Source: Oopsacas minuta
Lineage: Eukaryota > Animalia > Porifera
Direction: 5' to 3'
DNA length: 64,000 bases
Assembly: GCA_024704765.1 (NCBI GenBank)
Contig: JAKMXF010000177.1
Location: 62,001 to 126,000, forward strand
Shown here: piece by piece, positions 30,901-64,000 of the stretch
Position numbering within the stretch: the stretch's first letter is position 1
How the letters are laid out: each line of letters opens with the position of its first letter
The notes under the pieces: model-generated
Told to the model about the DNA's origin: nothing
The model's input: the letters and a program-made list of their open reading frames with translations, nothing else
Databases searched by the model: none
Translations under genes and position numbers: made by a program

Positions 30901-31742
30901 TCTTCATTTTTGCCCTTTTTAGTTAGGCAATTGGCCCGATGGTATTCAACCTATTGGAATTTCACAGATGTCAGACACTTAGTCCCCCAACCACAATAGA
31001 GTTACGGTAACCTAAAATTGGATTATTCCTCACACAGGAATCTAGGGGGCAAAACGAGGGGCAAGGCGTTTTCACTCTTTTAGCAGGAGGCATGACATTT
31101 GGATCTATAATTTTCTATGTGGGTATGACCATATAGCTGGGCTGTGGCTTATTCTGGCTTTGAAATCTTTGGAGCCCATTCCATCTAGTGGGCACCAAGT
31201 TCTATATATGGGACAAGTTATAGTTACTACATTAATTACCTTTCTATTGTCTCGTCGCGTAGGTTTGAACAATTTCTCATAACTGCATGATACACATTTA
31301 GTTTGGAGTATTTTGCGATCGACATTATGCTTTGCTAATATAAAAAAGATGGATGCATGTGGTAATACTAAAAAATAATGCATAGGTACATATATCAATA
31401 CAAGATATATTCCGCTTATATTTATGTGTGATTGCATAATATGAGGTTAAGATGCGGGCGAACCCAGCGAAGAGAGCCGAAATTTACAGTTTCCAATCTG
31501 AGCGAAAGGGAGATGCCCGGGGCACGAGATTTTGCCAACGGGGGCACTGTCCCATATGCTCCCGCGACATCCCTGTCTACACGTATACACACCGGATTTT
31601 GTATTGAATATCTTCAGATAGTTGACATGAATATGTTCTCGAGAATTTCGACTCGCTAAGTATTATCTATGAAATAGCGAAATAATTGTTAGGTCATCAG
31701 AACATTATTGGAAGATGTTGGTAAAAATGTGGCGCTCATGGT

Positions 31743-34575
31743 CACGGGTCTCTCAGAAAATCATATTGATCGAAAAAACGAGGTCCTTGAGATTTTTCAT
31801 GATTCTTGTGTAGAATTTTGCGTAGAATCCGATTCTGTTGCCAAAAAAATATTTCTCACACAAATTTTTGAGTTATTTTATATTTTTTTGTAAAAAAAAA
31901 ATTTTTTAGTTCCCATTTTATATGTTGTCGGGTTGCTAATTTATCATATTAGAATCATCGTTATCACTCATACATTGAATATAATACATCCATCAGTCAC
32001 ATATAGAATAAATTAAGTACTTATAAAATTAACGAAATTAATTTCCTTGACAGCATTTAGTAGGTTTTCGCCGTAATTTTCTAGAGACTCGCTACATTGA
32101 TAATTTCTCCAAACTTTGATGAATCGAGAATGAGCTGATTCAGCTGCCTGCTCTGAAACGGCGCCCAATCCCATACCAACTGGAAGGAATTTGGTGATAA
32201 ATGGGATAACATGTCTGCACACTATATGGACTTTTGTTGAACAATTCAGCCCAGTTAATTTGAATGCTTCTTCAAATTGAAATATCGCCAGTTTGTAATC
32301 ACCTTGTATCTTTTGCCCAAAACATGTCCTCACTACCTCTGAAAATCGCTTTAAAGCAATGCTGGATGAGTTGCTAATTGGAAAACCAATCTGCTCAACC
32401 ATCAATGTAATTTTCCGCATTGCATTACCTTCAAATGCGCCTCCATGATAAGAACTTCGAGATATGTTATTGTGCTTCAGTAATAATTCATGTGTAACTA
32501 ACTCTTCTTCAGACATTGTAGCCACGATCGCATTGTACAACTTCTGACCAACCCCTAACAAAAGATGTAACTCGGGAATATTGAACATCTGCATGTAGTC
32601 AACCATCCATACACCAAGAGCCTCCATATCTTCTACACCATCACAGTCAATCGCATGATTCTTTGAGTCGGAGTTATATTCTTCACACAATTTTTGGTAC
32701 ATCTCTGCATGATGTGCTGATGATCTTGATTTGAATTCGACATGATCCAATCCACTTTTAGCATCCCATACACACCAAATGCATGGGTAACGTCCAAGCA
32801 TAATACCCAGACAGAGAGCAGCGGCTTTGAGATCAAAGGTAAAAGATACGTTGTACTCATGAATAAACTTTTGAATTTCCGGGGCATTCAGTATTATAGA
32901 AAAATTGTAATTATTTTCAGGAGCACTTGATACCCATAAGAAGATTAGATTTCGCACAGAATTTTCCAGTTGTAGACACATGACAAGCTTAGTGAACCCA
33001 CAACCATAATCAAGGCCAAGCTTAAAATTGAAACTGTAAACTGAAGATTCTCCGCTAATGTTGTAGACTTTTTCTATCAGTTTGTCGATGTTGCAACAGC
33101 GTACGACCCAAGTCTTTCTGATATCAGAGGAATACTTCTCTTTGCTCCATTCCAGATCTAATTGGACGCATTCGAATATATCATCACAATATTGTTTCCG
33201 TTCGTCGTAATAGTCCTTCATTGATGGACAGGCCACGCCAGCATCCCTTATTACTTTGGTTACAGCTTTTAGTTGCTTGTTACTCATTGCTCCGCCAGTG
33301 CATTTTATCTGTGCGATGTCAGAGAAATCCATTTTGGGCATTTTGTGTTGAGGTAACTGGTCCAAATTACCAGGAAGCATATGAATTGGATGGCCTCCCG
33401 ATGGTCTAGGTAACGTTATACGCGAGTCCTCACTTGCACTGCGGAATTTTCGTAAGATTTCGGAACATACGACAGGTTCAATAGAACGTTTTCGTGCTAA
33501 CAAAAATTGGCTATTATTTACCAAAGAAGTTTTTGAGCAAGTATGCGGAAATCCGGGACTTATTGTGTTTAAACACTTACTACAAAGGTTAAGAACCTTT
33601 TTGGGAGAGTTGATCGCAGGACGTCCAGGTTTTTCGTGGAGAATTTGCAAAGAAGCACGATTTCTAGGTCCAAATCTCGAACTTTCCATGCACATTACAC
33701 AGGTATTGACTGAACTACACGTATTCAAGCGAGTATTTCGTATAATTGGCCAATTGAATCGAACAGGAATTTCCCTTGAAGTATCATCATGCATTAATCG
33801 ATTAACCAAATAGAGCTTGCAAGTATTGCACAAAACATTTGGCCGATTATCGTCCATCGGATCGATTGGCTCGAAAAACTTCGAATATTGCTCACCCAAA
33901 TGAGTAGAAATAAGGCTATTGTTTTTAATAGTTATCTTCCCAACTTTAATACAACACCAACGACAAATTTTGTCTTTTGCAGACTCGTGCTTACTCATAA
34001 ATACCAACAGTAGAAATAGATATCAGAACAATTATGTATCAGAAAAATTATATAGAAAATGAGTACAAGCATTCTTTAAATAGTTTTTCTATGCAAACAG
34101 ATATTCGTTAAACACCTTTAATTACTAATTATCACTGAATGGAAACTACTTAAAAGTATTCAAAGGACTCGATTAGGTGATTAATGACGTGCAATCAAAC
34201 TATTGTTACTATTGTTAAACTATTCGAACCTGATACCATACAGAAAAATGAATGACATAATAGAATAGAATAAAACCGCAATACTATTGAAAATTCTAAG
34301 TGCATGCAGATGTAAACAACAATGTCTAAGCATATCATAATAATATCTGATTGCCAATGGTGATGCATCTGCCATCGCTGTCATGATGAGAATCTAAAAT
34401 ATTCGAATTGTAAAAAATTATTTTTTTACAAAAAAATAAATTTATCGAAAAAATTTGCGTGGGAAATATTTTTTTGACAACAGAATCGGATTCTACGCAA
34501 AATTCTACACAAGAATCATGAAAAATCTCAAGGACCTCGTTTTTTCGATCAATATGATTTTCTGAGAGACCCATG
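31743..34575 (-). mobile_element. Complete Chapaev-type (CMC superfamily, RAG1/Transib-related) DNA transposon
   Basis: ~160-bp TIRs (31743-~31908, ~34410-34575) starting CACGGGTCTCTCAG / CATGGGTCTCTCAG. 4-bp flanks TGGT (31739-31742) and CGGT (34576-34579). One long internal ORF. Confidence 0.88.
32013..34007 (-). CDS. Intact Chapaev-type transposase (~661-664 aa; first ATG at 33998)
   Basis: N-terminal Chapa-like Cys/His domain (H-x7-CRWC, PNVLCNTC, W...C...CVMC). Core motifs: KLGLDYG (D), TFDLK (D), YPCIWC, ELHLLLG, KVHIVCRHV and GAVSEQAAES (E), collinear with the RAG1/Transib core. No stops. Confidence 0.85.
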   Translation of the reverse strand: MVFMSKHESAKDKICRWCCIKVGKITIKNNSLISTHLGEQYSKFFEPIDPMDDNRPNVLCNTCKLYLVNRLMHDDTSREIPVRFNWPIIRNTRLNTCSSVNTCVMCMESSRFGPRNRASLQILHEKPGRPAINSPKKVLNLCSKCLNTISPGFPHTCSKTSLVNNSQFLLARKRSIEPVVCSEILRKFRSASEDSRITLPRPSGGHPIHMLPGNLDQLPQHKMPKMDFSDIAQIKCTGGAMSNKQLKAVTKVIRDAGVACPSMKDYYDERKQYCDDIFECVQLDLEWSKEKYSSDIRKTWVVRCCNIDKLIEKVYNISGESSVYSFNFKLGLDYGCGFTKLVMCLQLENSVRNLIFLWVSSAPENNYNFSIILNAPEIQKFIHEYNVSFTFDLKAAALCLGIMLGRYPCIWCVWDAKSGLDHVEFKSRSSAHHAEMYQKLCEEYNSDSKNHAIDCDGVEDMEALGVWMVDYMQMFNIPELHLLLGVGQKLYNAIVATMSEEELVTHELLLKHNNISRSSYHGGAFEGNAMRKITLMVEQIGFPISNSSSIALKRFSEVVRTCFGQKIQGDYKLAIFQFEEAFKLTGLNCSTKVHIVCRHVIPFITKFLPVGMGLGAVSEQAAESAHSRFIKVWRNYQCSESLENYGENLLNAVKEINFVNFIST

Positions 34576-35449
34576 CGGTGCACGTCTGAAAACTGGTGTA
34601 TAATTTCAAGAATTTAAGCGATTAACAATAAATTATCGTCCTCTTTTGTCACCTGATAGATGCTGCACTCCAAACACTATATTAAAACTAAAATATTTCA
34701 CTCCAGGCCTTTAAAACTAGACAGCCAACCAAATTTTTTGGAAACAATGATACTTATAATAATTGCATAAACTGATCTAATATAAGAAATACGTCAAATT
34801 GATGATAAACTACAAATGTTATATAGTATATATTTGAAAGAAAATTGTTGCTAAGGTAGTTAGGTATTTACTATTGCGGTTAGCTATTTAAAATAATCAA
34901 AATATGCTTACTTTAGCTCGGTGTAATCGAAATTCCTATGGGTCATACATACAATCATCAATATTTTCCTACTAATTCGACGATGGAGATTCATAAAAAC
35001 GTAGTTAAATTCGTAATTGAAATTTTGCCCAATACGCCATATCGGCACACTGTGCCTCGAGGAGTAATGCGAGGAGTCAAAGGTTCGCACCAGGTAAAAC
35101 GAAACTAAGAAGGCCTGAAATATGATTAATCATATGATAAAATCATGTAGATATAGATTAAAAATGTCTATATTGAAATTTACATATTCGATGATCCCTT
35201 ACTAGTAGTTAAAACGAAATCACTCCATGATATTGAATAATATACAAAAATGTGTGAAAGTATGATTATTATTCATGTGCTAAATCAGGAAATTAATACT
35301 TTCAGACTCTAAAATTTTGTAAATCCGACTCTACCACCCAAATTTCCCTGACAACATGTTGAAACCTAATTTCTTGCTTGCTTTTGTATTTTACAAAGAA
35401 CGGTGTGAAAATATAATCAATCACCAAAAAGGTGTTAGGCAAGCTACTC

Positions 35450-58759: not shown

Positions 58760-59668
58760 GAACACGTGAATCATTTGTATATTGTTTAATATTAAAATAA
58801 TAATATATTGAAGAAATGTATTGGACATCTTTCAAGAATGTCGTAGAAAACTTTTTGGGAAATAAGTAAGCGGAAAACTACCAAGAACTTGTCCAAACAA
58901 TGCTTGCTAACTATGAATCTCTTGGCTATAGAATGAGCATAAGGATTCATTTTCTGCATTCGCATTTAAATTATTTTCCTGAAAATCTCGGTGCCTTAAG
59001 TGAGGAACAAGGTGAGCGGTTTCATCAGGACATTTGTGAAATGGAGAAAAGATATCAAGGGAAATGGAATACAAGTATGATGGGAGACTATTGTTGGTGT
59101 TTAAAAAGGGATTGCGACACAGCTCACAATCGAATGTCAAGAAAACGGCGTTTCATTCCATATGTTCCATGTTCAAGCTGTTAGGGATTAATAGTTTATC
59201 GCTTACAATTTCCAAGTCAAATAGTAATAGTGTTGTTGCTTAAAACTTCTGATCACAATCATAAATTCAACCACATTTATTTTATACTTCATCCAGATTG
59301 ATATATCGAAGGCATGATATACGTATATGTATAACGGGTCTCGGAAACCGTGATCTTGATCAAAAAAATACGGACCTTACGAAATTCACAGAATAAAAAA
59401 TATATTAACAATTAATGGGAACTCATATTGTTGTACATGGGTTCGAATAATATACTTTTAGATTGTTCTTTGGGTTTGAAAACATTACGGTACATTTTTC
59501 AAATAAATACTTTCCTTGAAGTCAAAGAAATTTGAAAAATTGACTTTCGAAAAATCTGGGCGTGTAGATAACAAATGAATGCCATATTTGAAATCAGCAT
59601 TAAAAATTGCAAGAATAGTTTGAATACATCGAAGAAGAAATTGTAATTTGAAAAAACGTTGCCCAGTG
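58760..59668 (+). mobile_element. Chapaev3-type transposon 3' fragment with right end
   Basis: MSIRIHFLHSHLNYFPENLGALSEEQGERFHQDI...RYQGKW...MMGDYCWCLKRD. Terminal ...TTGCCCAGTG at 59668. Confidence 0.8.
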
Positions 59669-61575: not shown

Positions 61576-62985
61576 TATTACTTGTATGCATGAGATTAAT
61601 TGTATAATAACTTTATAGAATCAAGTAAGATGTAAAGGTTAAAGTGGATTTACAAACAATGAATAGACAGCCTGATTGATAAGAAACACCCTATATATAC
61701 TAAAGTGCAATGGCATGTGTTTCTAATGGTAAAGGATCTATTAATATCAAGGTTAAGCCCAATTACCAAAGGCGCACTGGCAATTCTTACCAGATGCCAC
61801 CTGGCTACCAAACCCAATATATAGGGTGGCGCATTAGATGAAGGGCCGCAACACCACGGTAAATAATTTTTTTAAAACATAAAGGGATCTAAAATCTCAA
61901 CATCTAGGTGAATCTAACGATTTCGGGTACAAATACTGCAGAATCCCTGGTCTTTTCCTAGAATACTAATAAATTGTAGATATGATGATAGAATCGTGAG
62001 ACTTTTGACGAATATCACGATTATAAAGGTTTCTAGGTGAAGAGCCCCGCATCTATTAATTTCACATTGTAAGGAATAAATAACATAGACTAACTAACAA
62101 ATAATCATTAATTTTCTCATTTCTCAATGGGAAAGCAACGAAAAATGGATTCACTAGCATTATTCTAATATTCATAACCTAATCACAAATATTGAATACA
62201 ACGACACAAAATCTTGTCGATTGGGCATCATTTTATATGTAAATGATCAATAATGAACATTCCAAATTTCATAATTCATCAACTAACAAAATTCTTAGTT
62301 GGTACGAAATATTGGCGGGGTGTATAGAGTATCTGGGCGGGTTGCAATAGGAACTCTGGATGCAATTTGGGGATGCAAGTAATAGTGAATCCACGCTATA
62401 AATATTTAATAGATTTCAAATAGAATATATCAAAAAATTAGAAACTAATCTTCTCCTTTCATGCTCGCTCTCGGGTACATAATTAATGAAGATAGATAGT
62501 CGTATATTCAGTAGCTCATGTATGGATAGAGCTGCTTTCTGTAATCAAGATAACAAAAAATATGAGGCCTCCTTAGAAATATTGATAGATTTCAATTTCA
62601 CTAACTCAATCATTGTTGTATGAATATCCTCAACCGTGACCTAAGTAATATAAGGCCTGGATATTGTGCATAGAATTACCTACCATGGATTACATTGTAT
62701 AATTCATCCATAATTGTAACATGCTACATTGACATTGCACAACTCAACAAGATTTCTCATCAGAGATCACATACATTTATCTTAGCATACTTTTGAATGC
62801 TGAACTCGAATCTGGAATCAGAATTTCTCTAGCACGTCTAGTTATTCTGAAATCCAATATCCATTTTTTCAATAGTATAGTGTTACCTAGTTAATAAATT
62901 GCTATATGAGCATGCCTATTTTGATTCAATTATCTGGAATATAATGACTTTACTTATTTGAATTCAAGCAAATCAAATTATAAAC

Positions 62986-64000
62986 ATGCATCGTAATTGT
63001 AGAATTCATCCCGACAATTTCTGTTACGTTTGTGGTCTTCTTTGGGTAAAATCACAAAGACGACCAATCACAAATCAATTAAAGAATATTTACAAATTGT
63101 ACTTCGAATGTCCACTTGGTGACCAAGACAAGTCGTGGGCACCACATGTTATATGCACTTCTTGTTCAAGTGGACTACGTGATTGGTTGAACAAAAGGAA
63201 AGTTTCAATGCCATTTGCAATACCCATGGTCTGGAGGGAACAGAAATATCACCTTGATAATTGTTACTTTTGCTTTATCGACATTACAGGATTCTCAGCC
63301 AAGAATAAGCACGCTCTTGTTTACCCAGACTTGGATTCTGCTCGCAGGCCAATTCCACACATTTCATTACCAATCCCAATTCCCAAGCCACAGCAAATTA
63401 AAATCGGGTCTGATATGGTGGAAGATGTTCATGGAGATTCTACAGATGCTAATTATGTCCCGAAGATGAATTACTAGAGCACAAACATTTATACAGGGAG
63501 AATTGAATGACCTGGTCAGGGATCTAGACTTATCTAAGGACAAAGCTGAACTCCTTGCATCCAGGCTCAAACAGAAAAACCCACTCGACAAAGATGTCCT
63601 AGTATCCCACTATCGCAAGCGAAATTTCGATCTCACTCAATACTACACCACTGATGGTCCACTGTGCTATTGCAATGATATCGAAGGACTCTATGCAAAC
63701 CTATTACAAGAACATTATTCCTCTGATTGGCGCCTTTTCATCGACTCGTCAAAACGCAGTTCGAAAGCTGTTCTGTTGCATAACGGAAATCTAAAGCTTG
63801 GCGTTCCAATTGCTCACTCTGTCTATCTCAAAGGAACCTTCCTCAATTTGCAGGAAGTTTTGGAGGCAATACAGTATAGAACACATATATGGAATATCTG
63901 CGGTGATCTTAAGATAATCGGGCTATTGATGGGCTTGCAACAAGGTTTTACAAAGTATTGTTGTTTCCTATGTCTATGGGACAGCTGAGCAACTGGTGAA
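62986..64000 (+). pseudogene. Chapaev3-type transposase, 5' half (continues past window end)
   Basis: CRIHPDNFCYVCG, WAPHVICTSC, WREQ..H...CYFC, WRLFIDSSK and ICGDLK...GLQQGFTKYCCFLCLWDS. Frameshift at ~63480 and a stop at 63986. Confidence 0.85.

Follow-up and report, generated by a model that had tools for sequence, protein, structure and literature searches.

A probable Chapaev-group transposon family with a predicted RAG1-like core in the sponge Oopsacas minuta

RAG1, a recombinase of the vertebrate immune system, has mobile relatives in the Transib and ProtoRAG elements; Transib, ProtoRAG and RAG duplicate 5 bp of target DNA, as Kapitonov and Jurka are said to have reported for Transib in 2005, and ProtoRAG carries a RAG2-like gene (RAG2L). 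Elements of the Chapaev1/2 type were reportedly described by the same authors in 2007 from lancelet and sea anemone. To our knowledge, Chapaev elements are the only transposons reported with an N-terminal zinc domain of the RAG1 type, and we know of none that has been studied biochemically. Their published hallmarks are a target-site duplication (TSD) of 3-4 bp, CAC...GTG termini and a transposase with an Asp-Asp-Glu (DDE) triad and the motifs C(2)C, LH and H(4)H, the Chapaev3 type integrating between A and T and duplicating the 3 bp TWA (PMC4079192). They also carry the Chapa domain, and their core has been placed either with CACTA and Mirage elements (CMC) or with Transib and RAG1, as a clade of the Transib superfamily (PMC4411706). 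The NZD/Chapa domain is typical of Chapaev and absent from Transib (preprint 10.64898/2026.01.24.700457). Here, we analysed a stretch of 64,000 nucleotides of the sponge Oopsacas minuta (contig JAKMXF010000177.1 of assembly GCA_024704765.1, positions 62,001 to 126,000; hereafter the window), in which a 2833-bp element with terminal inverted repeats (TIRs) and a single transposase gene occupies positions 31743-34575.

We assign this element with considerable confidence to the Chapaev group, as an autonomous class II cut-and-paste transposon of the 4-bp type distinct from Chapaev3; its family is young and numbers two dozen copies or more in O. minuta. All sequence hallmarks of Chapaev were found, namely CAC...GTG ends, a TSD within the 3-4-bp range, and the DDE triad together with C(2)C, LH and H(4)H. 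The duplication is of 4 bp and does not follow the TWA pattern, which separates the element from Chapaev3. Neither the 5-bp duplication of Transib nor the convergent RAG1L/RAG2L gene pair of ProtoRAG was found, there being only one open reading frame (ORF), and the predicted core fold shared with Transib is preceded by a conserved N-terminal zinc domain, whereas the Transib core lacks NZD/Chapa.

With the Chapaev1/2 elements the sponge element has in common the CAC...GTG ends, a 4-bp TSD, a single transposase of ~660 aa with the same catalytic and zinc-site motifs and a candidate Chapa zinc domain at the N-terminus; it differs in its hexactinellid host, in its TIRs of 164 nt (128 and 417 nt in two sister families) and in having no RING after the zinc domain. 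The Chapaev3 elements Merrow, Garfield and Conan likewise have CAC ends, a Chapa-type N-terminus and the DDE and C(2)C/LH/H(4)H motifs, but duplicate the 3 bp TWA in place of 4 bp. The element is not of a new kind, and the low novelty that the original prediction had foreseen for a member of a described Chapaev family essentially applies at the family level. No paper in the literature that we searched reports Chapaev in sponges.

Element structure, copies and target sites

The element is bounded by two TIR arms of 164 nt each that are 90% complementary, one on the 3' side of the gene (31743-31906, plus strand) and the other on its 5' side (34412-34575, minus strand), and its terminal 20-mer occurs at two places in the window, both of them element ends, against none expected by chance. 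The 3'-side arm has the terminus CACGGGT, after which come a variable stretch of ~23 nt, an A6 tract and a TTGAGATTTTT block. The left end of the element reads CACGGG and the right end, reverse-complemented, CATGGG. Between the arms lies an intron-less, stop-free ORF of 661 aa on the minus strand (32016-33998, extending over 32013-33998 with its stop codon at 32013-32015), which begins with ATG. No second plausible ORF was found in the element, as the others of at least 80 aa either overlap the main ORF in another frame or on the opposite strand or extend across a TIR. The ~850 bp of element DNA beyond the ORF are TIR and short untranslated sequence, so that no room is left for a RAG2-like gene. 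The repeat and ORF coordinates bear out the earlier description of this locus as a 2.8-kb element with CAC-initiated TIRs, 4-bp flanks and a stop-free ORF of ~661 aa, and the single ORF likewise bears out its statement that a RAG2-like gene could not be accommodated.

Nine loci of the assembly were compared, one of which (L006) is the window copy itself (100% over 2833 bp) and eight of which are further full-length copies with 98.0-99.6% identity to it. Hypothetical proteins of O. minuta match the window protein at 99% identity, and the cluster of the latter at 90% protein identity comprises 24 different variants from the same assembly; the count of copies and of their identity that the original prediction had suggested therefore yields a multi-copy family. 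In the Logan contigs of the run that best represents the element, k-mer depth is 60-110 times as high in internal contigs as in the unique flank contig, a ratio that, as a rough guide only, fits tens of copies. The full ORF of 661 aa is kept in six of the nine copies, including some annotated by NCBI as only 560 aa, and in the remaining three it is interrupted, either by a nonsense codon or by frameshifts. The window protein is one residue (L68, serine in the others) apart from the other five intact copies sampled, and L003, another copy on the same contig, agrees with the majority wherever the proteins vary.

The NCBI models of several copies (L006:3501-5183, P0001 and P0014) are 560 aa or less and drop the first 101 residues, which hold the zinc domain, though the ORF of 661 aa is open; this truncation is of consequence for the annotation of the genome. 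Chapaev goes unmentioned in the O. minuta genome paper, which assigns 1.22% of the genome to "Other (Mirage, P-element, Transib)".

The 5' end reads CACGGG in all eight other copies and the 3' end reads CCCGTG in seven of them, with CCAGTG in L007. The earlier reading of the right terminus of the window copy as CATGG is correct, and the comparison adds that it is private to this copy: the terminus CATGGGT on the 5' side of the gene carries a C>T change at a CpG, at the third base of CAC, and the eight other copies keep CAC/GTG. A perfect 4-bp TSD flanks five of the nine copies (GATA, CTGT, AAGT, CCGA and ATCG), and the fifth flanking base is mismatched in perfect-TSD copies (a-GATA against GATA-c; t-CTGT against CTGT-a).

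The flanks of the window copy, TGGT (31739-31742) and CGGT (34576-34579), match at three of four positions. In gene orientation CGGT becomes ACCG and TGGT becomes ACCA, so that the copy reads ACCG/ACCA, and L003, situated 74 kb downstream in inverted orientation (JAKMXF010000177.1, ~170830-173645), shows the reciprocal ACCA and ACCG; when the swapped flanks are paired again, two more perfect TSDs, ACCG and ACCA, result. The left flank of the window copy and the right flank of L003 are moreover continuous in a paralogous host repeat (the left flank of L002, 78-84% identity), which has a single ACAG where the filled site reads ACCG-element-ACCG. As the paralogue continues across the site, it represents a paralogous empty site and confirms the 4-bp duplication, and this continuity taken together with the reciprocal flanks indicates that the two copies exchanged flanks. 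TGGT is half of a TSD that originally belonged to the insertion site of the partner copy, and the counterpart of CGGT is the flank ACCG of that partner. Either recombination between the two copies has inverted the 74 kb that separate them, or the repeats have been misassembled; in the case of an inversion, window positions 34576-64000 would fall inside the inverted segment. A reading of the TGGT/CGGT mismatch as CpG decay of a TSD was considered and rejected, since the reciprocal pattern at L003 and the paralogous continuity explain it better. A search with joined flanks for a direct empty site gave no match in the DNA searched, and the empty site came from the flank-to-flank comparison. None of the TSDs, ACCG and ACCA included, is TWA-patterned.

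These observations also bear on whether the locus might be a domesticated host gene, or one of a host gene family, descended from a transposase. The intact ORF and its annotation by NCBI as a hypothetical protein-coding gene would suit such an origin. Every copy, however, lies between long TIRs in different flanking DNA with 4-bp duplications, dozens of near-identical copies are found at unrelated loci and a paralogous site is empty, so that we regard domestication as extremely unlikely. RAG1 is a host recombinase, whereas the sponge element is mobile and multi-copy.

The transposase and its predicted structure

The window protein alone had no match in Pfam, and among PDB sequences neither phmmer nor a profile built from nine sequences matched anything. 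A profile search against 1.84 billion representatives returned 5764 relatives at E<=1e-3, 672 of them at E<=1e-30, which makes the family a large one. In an alignment of 88 family sequences, D330, E361, D389, C409, L477-H478, E616 and E620 were invariant, and C406, H591, H596 and H623 were conserved in at least 90%. When the profile of these 88 sequences was compared with all PDB sequences, it was significant only for zebrafish RAG1 (E 2.8e-4) and amphioxus RAG1L (E 6.7e-4). It pairs DLK with DEK, PCxWC with CTLC, ELHLLLG with ALHCDIG, FEGN with MNGN, KVHxxxxHV with YLHKTLAHV and SEQAxES with SEGNES of RAG1, among which we take the counterparts to be mouse RAG1 D708, C727/C730, H937/H942 and E962. 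The first catalytic aspartate, D330, falls outside the sequence alignment and is matched to RAG1 at the level of the predicted fold only.

The motifs listed in the original prediction are all present on the minus strand: GLDYG with D330 (33009-33011), TFDLK with D389 (32832-32834), SEQAAES with E616 (32151-32153), CIWC with C406/C409 (32772-32783) and HIVCRH with H591/H596 (32211-32228), the LH motif being residues 477-478. Their mapping onto RAG1 is upheld by the profile alignment for the second aspartate, CxxC, LH, GN, HxxxxH and the glutamate, and by the predicted fold. Across 70 family members Pfam gave neither a CACTA-type transposase model nor a RAG1 core model, and the only recurrent families were DUF1280 (16 members) and zf-AD (13 members).

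An AlphaFold2 model was built on the 88-sequence alignment and reached a mean predicted local distance difference test score (pLDDT) of 88. Foldseek against the PDB returned 49 matches at E<=1e-3, all of them RAG1, BbRAG1L or HzTransib, with template modelling (TM) scores of 0.45-0.58; the range from the best E value of 3.8e-12 to 6.5e-6 was occupied exclusively by RAG1, RAG1L and Transib, and the next family, the P element, followed at E 0.012. With VIA-align, residues 153-661 of the model aligned with mouse RAG1 405-1000 over 460 residues (Z 22.7), and the scores were similarly high for zebrafish RAG1 (Z 22.2, root-mean-square deviation (rmsd) 3.8) and BbRAG1L (Z 21.1), then 17.0 for HzTransib (343 residues), and lower for the P element (13.3), Hermes (9.3) and ISCth4 (7.8). 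In these structural alignments, identity is 12-14% to RAG1 and ~11-13% to Transib. The margin in both Z and Foldseek scores over the P element and the others argues for a resemblance beyond the shared RNase-H fold. In the structural comparison that the original prediction had proposed, the model accordingly matches RAG1, RAG1L and Transib well above other transposases.

The model has an RNase-H DDE core that carries D330, D389 and E616, with inserted ZnC2/ZnH2 modules in which C406, C409, H591 and H596 make up a Cys2/His2 zinc site, and its predicted topology is RAG1-like all the way from the dimerisation and DNA-binding domain to the C-terminal one. The core-like region, residues 220-661 (32016-33341, minus strand), aligns structurally with mouse RAG1 460-1000. 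Two predicted helices, residues 153-190 (33429-33542, minus strand), lie opposite the region of the RAG1 nonamer-binding domain (NBD; RAG1 405-460), where the match is weak (rmsd 9.6). The solved structures of RAG1 and RAG1L (PDB 4WWX, 6DBI and 6B40) are the best matches to the model (Z 21-23 over ~405-460 residues), and RAG1 also has an N-terminal two-zinc domain that appears to be of the same kind. The sponge element differs from them in having neither RAG2/RAG2L nor RING, in duplicating 4 bp rather than 5 bp, in its symmetric ends as against the 12/23 arrangement, and in a spacing of 59 residues between the first two catalytic aspartates, compared with 108 in RAG1. Transib, represented by HzTransib (PDB 6PQN), shares with it the predicted core fold, the DDE triad, the CAC-initiated ends and the lack of a RAG2-like partner, but has a 5-bp duplication and no N-terminal NZD/Chapa.

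Given that the closest solved folds are RAG1, BbRAG1L and HzTransib and that the significant PDB sequence matches are confined to RAG1 and RAG1L, one might place the element in the Transib or RAG-like (ProtoRAG) lineage proper rather than in Chapaev, the more so as its CAC ends, with heptamer, ~23-nt variable stretch and A-tract, recall the recombination signal sequence with a 23-nt spacer (RSS-23) and Transib. We consider such a placement very improbable: the 4-bp duplication, the missing RAG2-like ORF and RING, the Pfam RAG1 core left unmatched throughout the 70 members, the short distance between the aspartates and the low identity to RAG1 all oppose it, as does the ZAD-like double zinc domain, which is absent from Transib (preprint 10.64898/2026.01.24.700457). 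The assignment to Chapaev remains our preferred one.

The N-terminal module, residues 1-110 (33669-33998, minus strand), contains the CxxC pairs C12/C15 and C57/C60, which form the ZAD-like site, with H4 and C94/C100/C103 as candidate ligands of a second site. In the 88-sequence alignment C100 and C103 are invariant, and H4, C12, C15, C57, C60 and C94 are conserved in at least 90%, as are C139, C142, H152 and C154, which form a third zinc-type motif, CxxC-x9-HxC (33531-33593, minus strand). With four ligands only, this motif at residues 139-154 is not a RING finger. The Pfam zf-AD model was matched by 29 of 66 family N-termini (best E 4.4e-8). A separate model of the N-terminus had a pLDDT of 81 and its top Foldseek rows were ZAD domains, without significance, and an N-terminal profile found among PDB sequences only a non-significant ZAD match (Grauzone, E 0.37). 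Atlas clusters that carry RAG1_imp_bd score 0.87-0.88.

According to the preprint 10.64898/2026.01.24.700457, the NZD of RAG1, or Chapa, comprises a ZAD-like ZFa and a ZFb that is formed in type I from one N-terminal and three C-terminal ligands, and has no solved homologue. The ligand order seen here (H4; C12/C15/C57/C60; C94/C100/C103) fits this type I scheme. The N-terminus is therefore consistent with, rather than proven to be, a ZAD-like double zinc module of the Chapa or RAG1-NZD type, the assignment being indirect.

Sister families and layout of the termini

A second O. minuta family, represented by P0040 (667 aa), is 56-60% identical in protein sequence to the window protein and has 26 variants in its cluster. 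One of its elements (L015:2067-4994, JAKMXF010000011.1) measures 2928 bp and has TIRs of 417 nt that agree at 99.5% and have CACGGGT as their terminus. In UniRef, some N-terminal fragments of this family are named 'ZAD domain-containing'. The ENA assembly ERZ25071281 yielded five copies of 2616 bp (L010-L014) that are 99.9% identical and encode the same protein of 666 aa, which is 60% identical to the window protein; their TIRs of 128 nt are perfect and likewise have the terminus CACGGGT, and four of the five have a perfect 4-bp TSD. Judged by these sequences, the set looks like a very young sister family that is probably active.

When the TIRs of the three families were aligned (L003:2424-2563, L010:2063-2202 and L015:2067-2206), the invariant blocks were CACGGGT, followed after ~23 variable nt by A6 at positions 31-36, TTGAGATTTTT at 45-55 and further blocks, and the two ends did not differ in layout. 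With the exception of the CAT end of the window copy, all three families keep CAC without variation. The succession of a heptamer, ~23 nt and an A-tract may recall RSS-23 and Transib ends, a comparison of layout that reportedly goes back to Kapitonov and Jurka in 2005; being drawn from three related families, it is a lead only. In a more distant relative, P0204 (its cluster representative, P0042, is ~24% identical), the sequence CACAGTG, which is the canonical RSS heptamer, stands at L016:213-219 in the partial left TIR region, some 140 nt beyond the stretch that can be paired as a TIR. As the contig cuts the right TIR, it could be either a terminus or a chance match.

Two further stretches of the window matched the family profile weakly. 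One (58870-59181, plus strand) is a C-terminal fragment with E 8e-7, and the other (62962-63985, plus strand, in two frames and reaching the window end) has a frameshifted N-terminus and an RNase-H region with E 1e-6 and 1e-9; both seem to be degraded members of this transposase family.

In an unlabelled FastTree phylogeny of the 88 sequences, the four sponge-type proteins formed a fully supported clade on a long stem, within a nine-member group apart from the bulk, and among the relatives retrieved from outside sponges none exceeds 33% identity to this clade. The nearest of these, P0046 (33%, 679 aa), comes from EukProt, from the transcriptome of the rotosphaerid protist Pompholyxophrys punicea, and could be a genuine element of that organism, prey or contaminant DNA, or the product of horizontal transfer. 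When window 31243-35075 was used as query, pieces of the element at 90-100% identity were found in runs of other organisms (X5, X6 and X18) and in marine metagenomes (X9-X15), and contigs of run X18 leave the element at 31739-31741 into different flanks. Such pieces could derive from related species, from other individuals or from horizontal spread.

Mobility of the family and its significance

By analogy with RAG and Transib, a multimer of the transposase would bind the CACGGGT termini and the subterminal blocks of both TIRs. Nicking by the DDE triad at the CAC border would then release the element, probably via a hairpin on the flanking DNA, and the 3'-OH ends would be inserted 4 bp apart into the target, where repair would give rise to the 4-bp duplication. 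A RAG2-like cofactor would be dispensed with. The catalytic chemistry, the hairpin step and the multimerisation are proposed on this analogy, and any present-day activity is likewise inferred.

Cleavage by RAG depends critically on the opening three bases of the RSS heptamer. Considering this together with the invariant CAC of the three families, the CAT end may make the window copy itself less mobile, though other copies could still be served by its protein. The window copy may thus combine a protein of near-majority sequence with being a poor substrate in cis. It had been put forward in the original prediction as a candidate active element; its ORF is indeed intact, but at least five other copies are equally intact, and because of its mutated CAC end it may be the less mobile one.

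The near-identical copies, the intact TSDs, the empty site and the mostly intact ORFs together constitute strong evidence of recent transposition, and the family has been recently active. It may be active still. Several observations weigh against the assignment of the family to Chapaev, its kinship with RAG1 or its activity. Membership in Chapaev rests on the hallmarks and not on a labelled phylogeny, and the Repbase Chapaev1/2 elements were compared by description. The sequence similarity to RAG1 is modest (E ~3e-4) and extends from the second aspartate on only, and no solved structure matches the N-terminal domain significantly (best E 0.48). Two of the nine O. minuta copies (L001 and L005) have no TSD, perhaps owing to similar exchanges with unsampled copies; the single copy of the P0040 family has no clean 4-bp TSD and is flanked by TAT on both sides in TA-rich DNA, and one of the five ERZ25071281 copies has no clean 4-bp TSD either. 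Among distinct variants in the copies there are 26 nonsynonymous to 14 synonymous changes, a ratio to be expected also if the copies have decayed largely neutrally since they inserted. Run X18, from another organism and guessed to be RNA, gives only short contigs at ~90-97% identity, which include non-coding parts and junctions with other flanks.

The near-neutral pattern of ORF substitutions is in keeping with a rival reading in which this is a recently extinct Chapaev family, its copies young but none of them transposing today, for instance through host silencing or a shared defect. We think this less likely than not. No run recorded as RNA contains the element among the Logan runs, none of which is so recorded; three of the nine copies are already broken and the window copy has lost CAC at one end, and with two copies devoid of TSDs and two recombined, some time has passed since insertion. 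All catalytic and zinc residues are intact, however, the copies are 98.0-99.9% identical, and the six full ORFs lie 0-6 residues from the majority sequence, which L003 encodes throughout. That the sister families, one of this genome and one of another assembly, likewise consist of many nearly identical copies also speaks against extinction.

The opposite and more far-reaching proposal is that this sponge Chapaev is a currently active, RAG2-independent transposase that unites an NZD-type zinc domain, an NBD-like module and a full RAG1-type core with RSS-23-like ends; as a whole we rate it as rather unlikely. If it is true, the whole RAG1 domain plan and the heptamer-spacer-A-tract ends would predate the split between sponges and other animals, and the family would be the first tractable Chapaev for biochemistry. 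For the genome of O. minuta, two copies of the element appear either to have mediated a 74-kb inversion or to have confused the assembly there. With its intact near-identical copies, defined ends, 4-bp duplication and confidently predicted RAG1-like structure, the sponge family offers a practical starting point, through which RAG-like hairpin chemistry without RAG2, the role of the NZD/Chapa domain and the age of the RAG1 domain plan may be studied.

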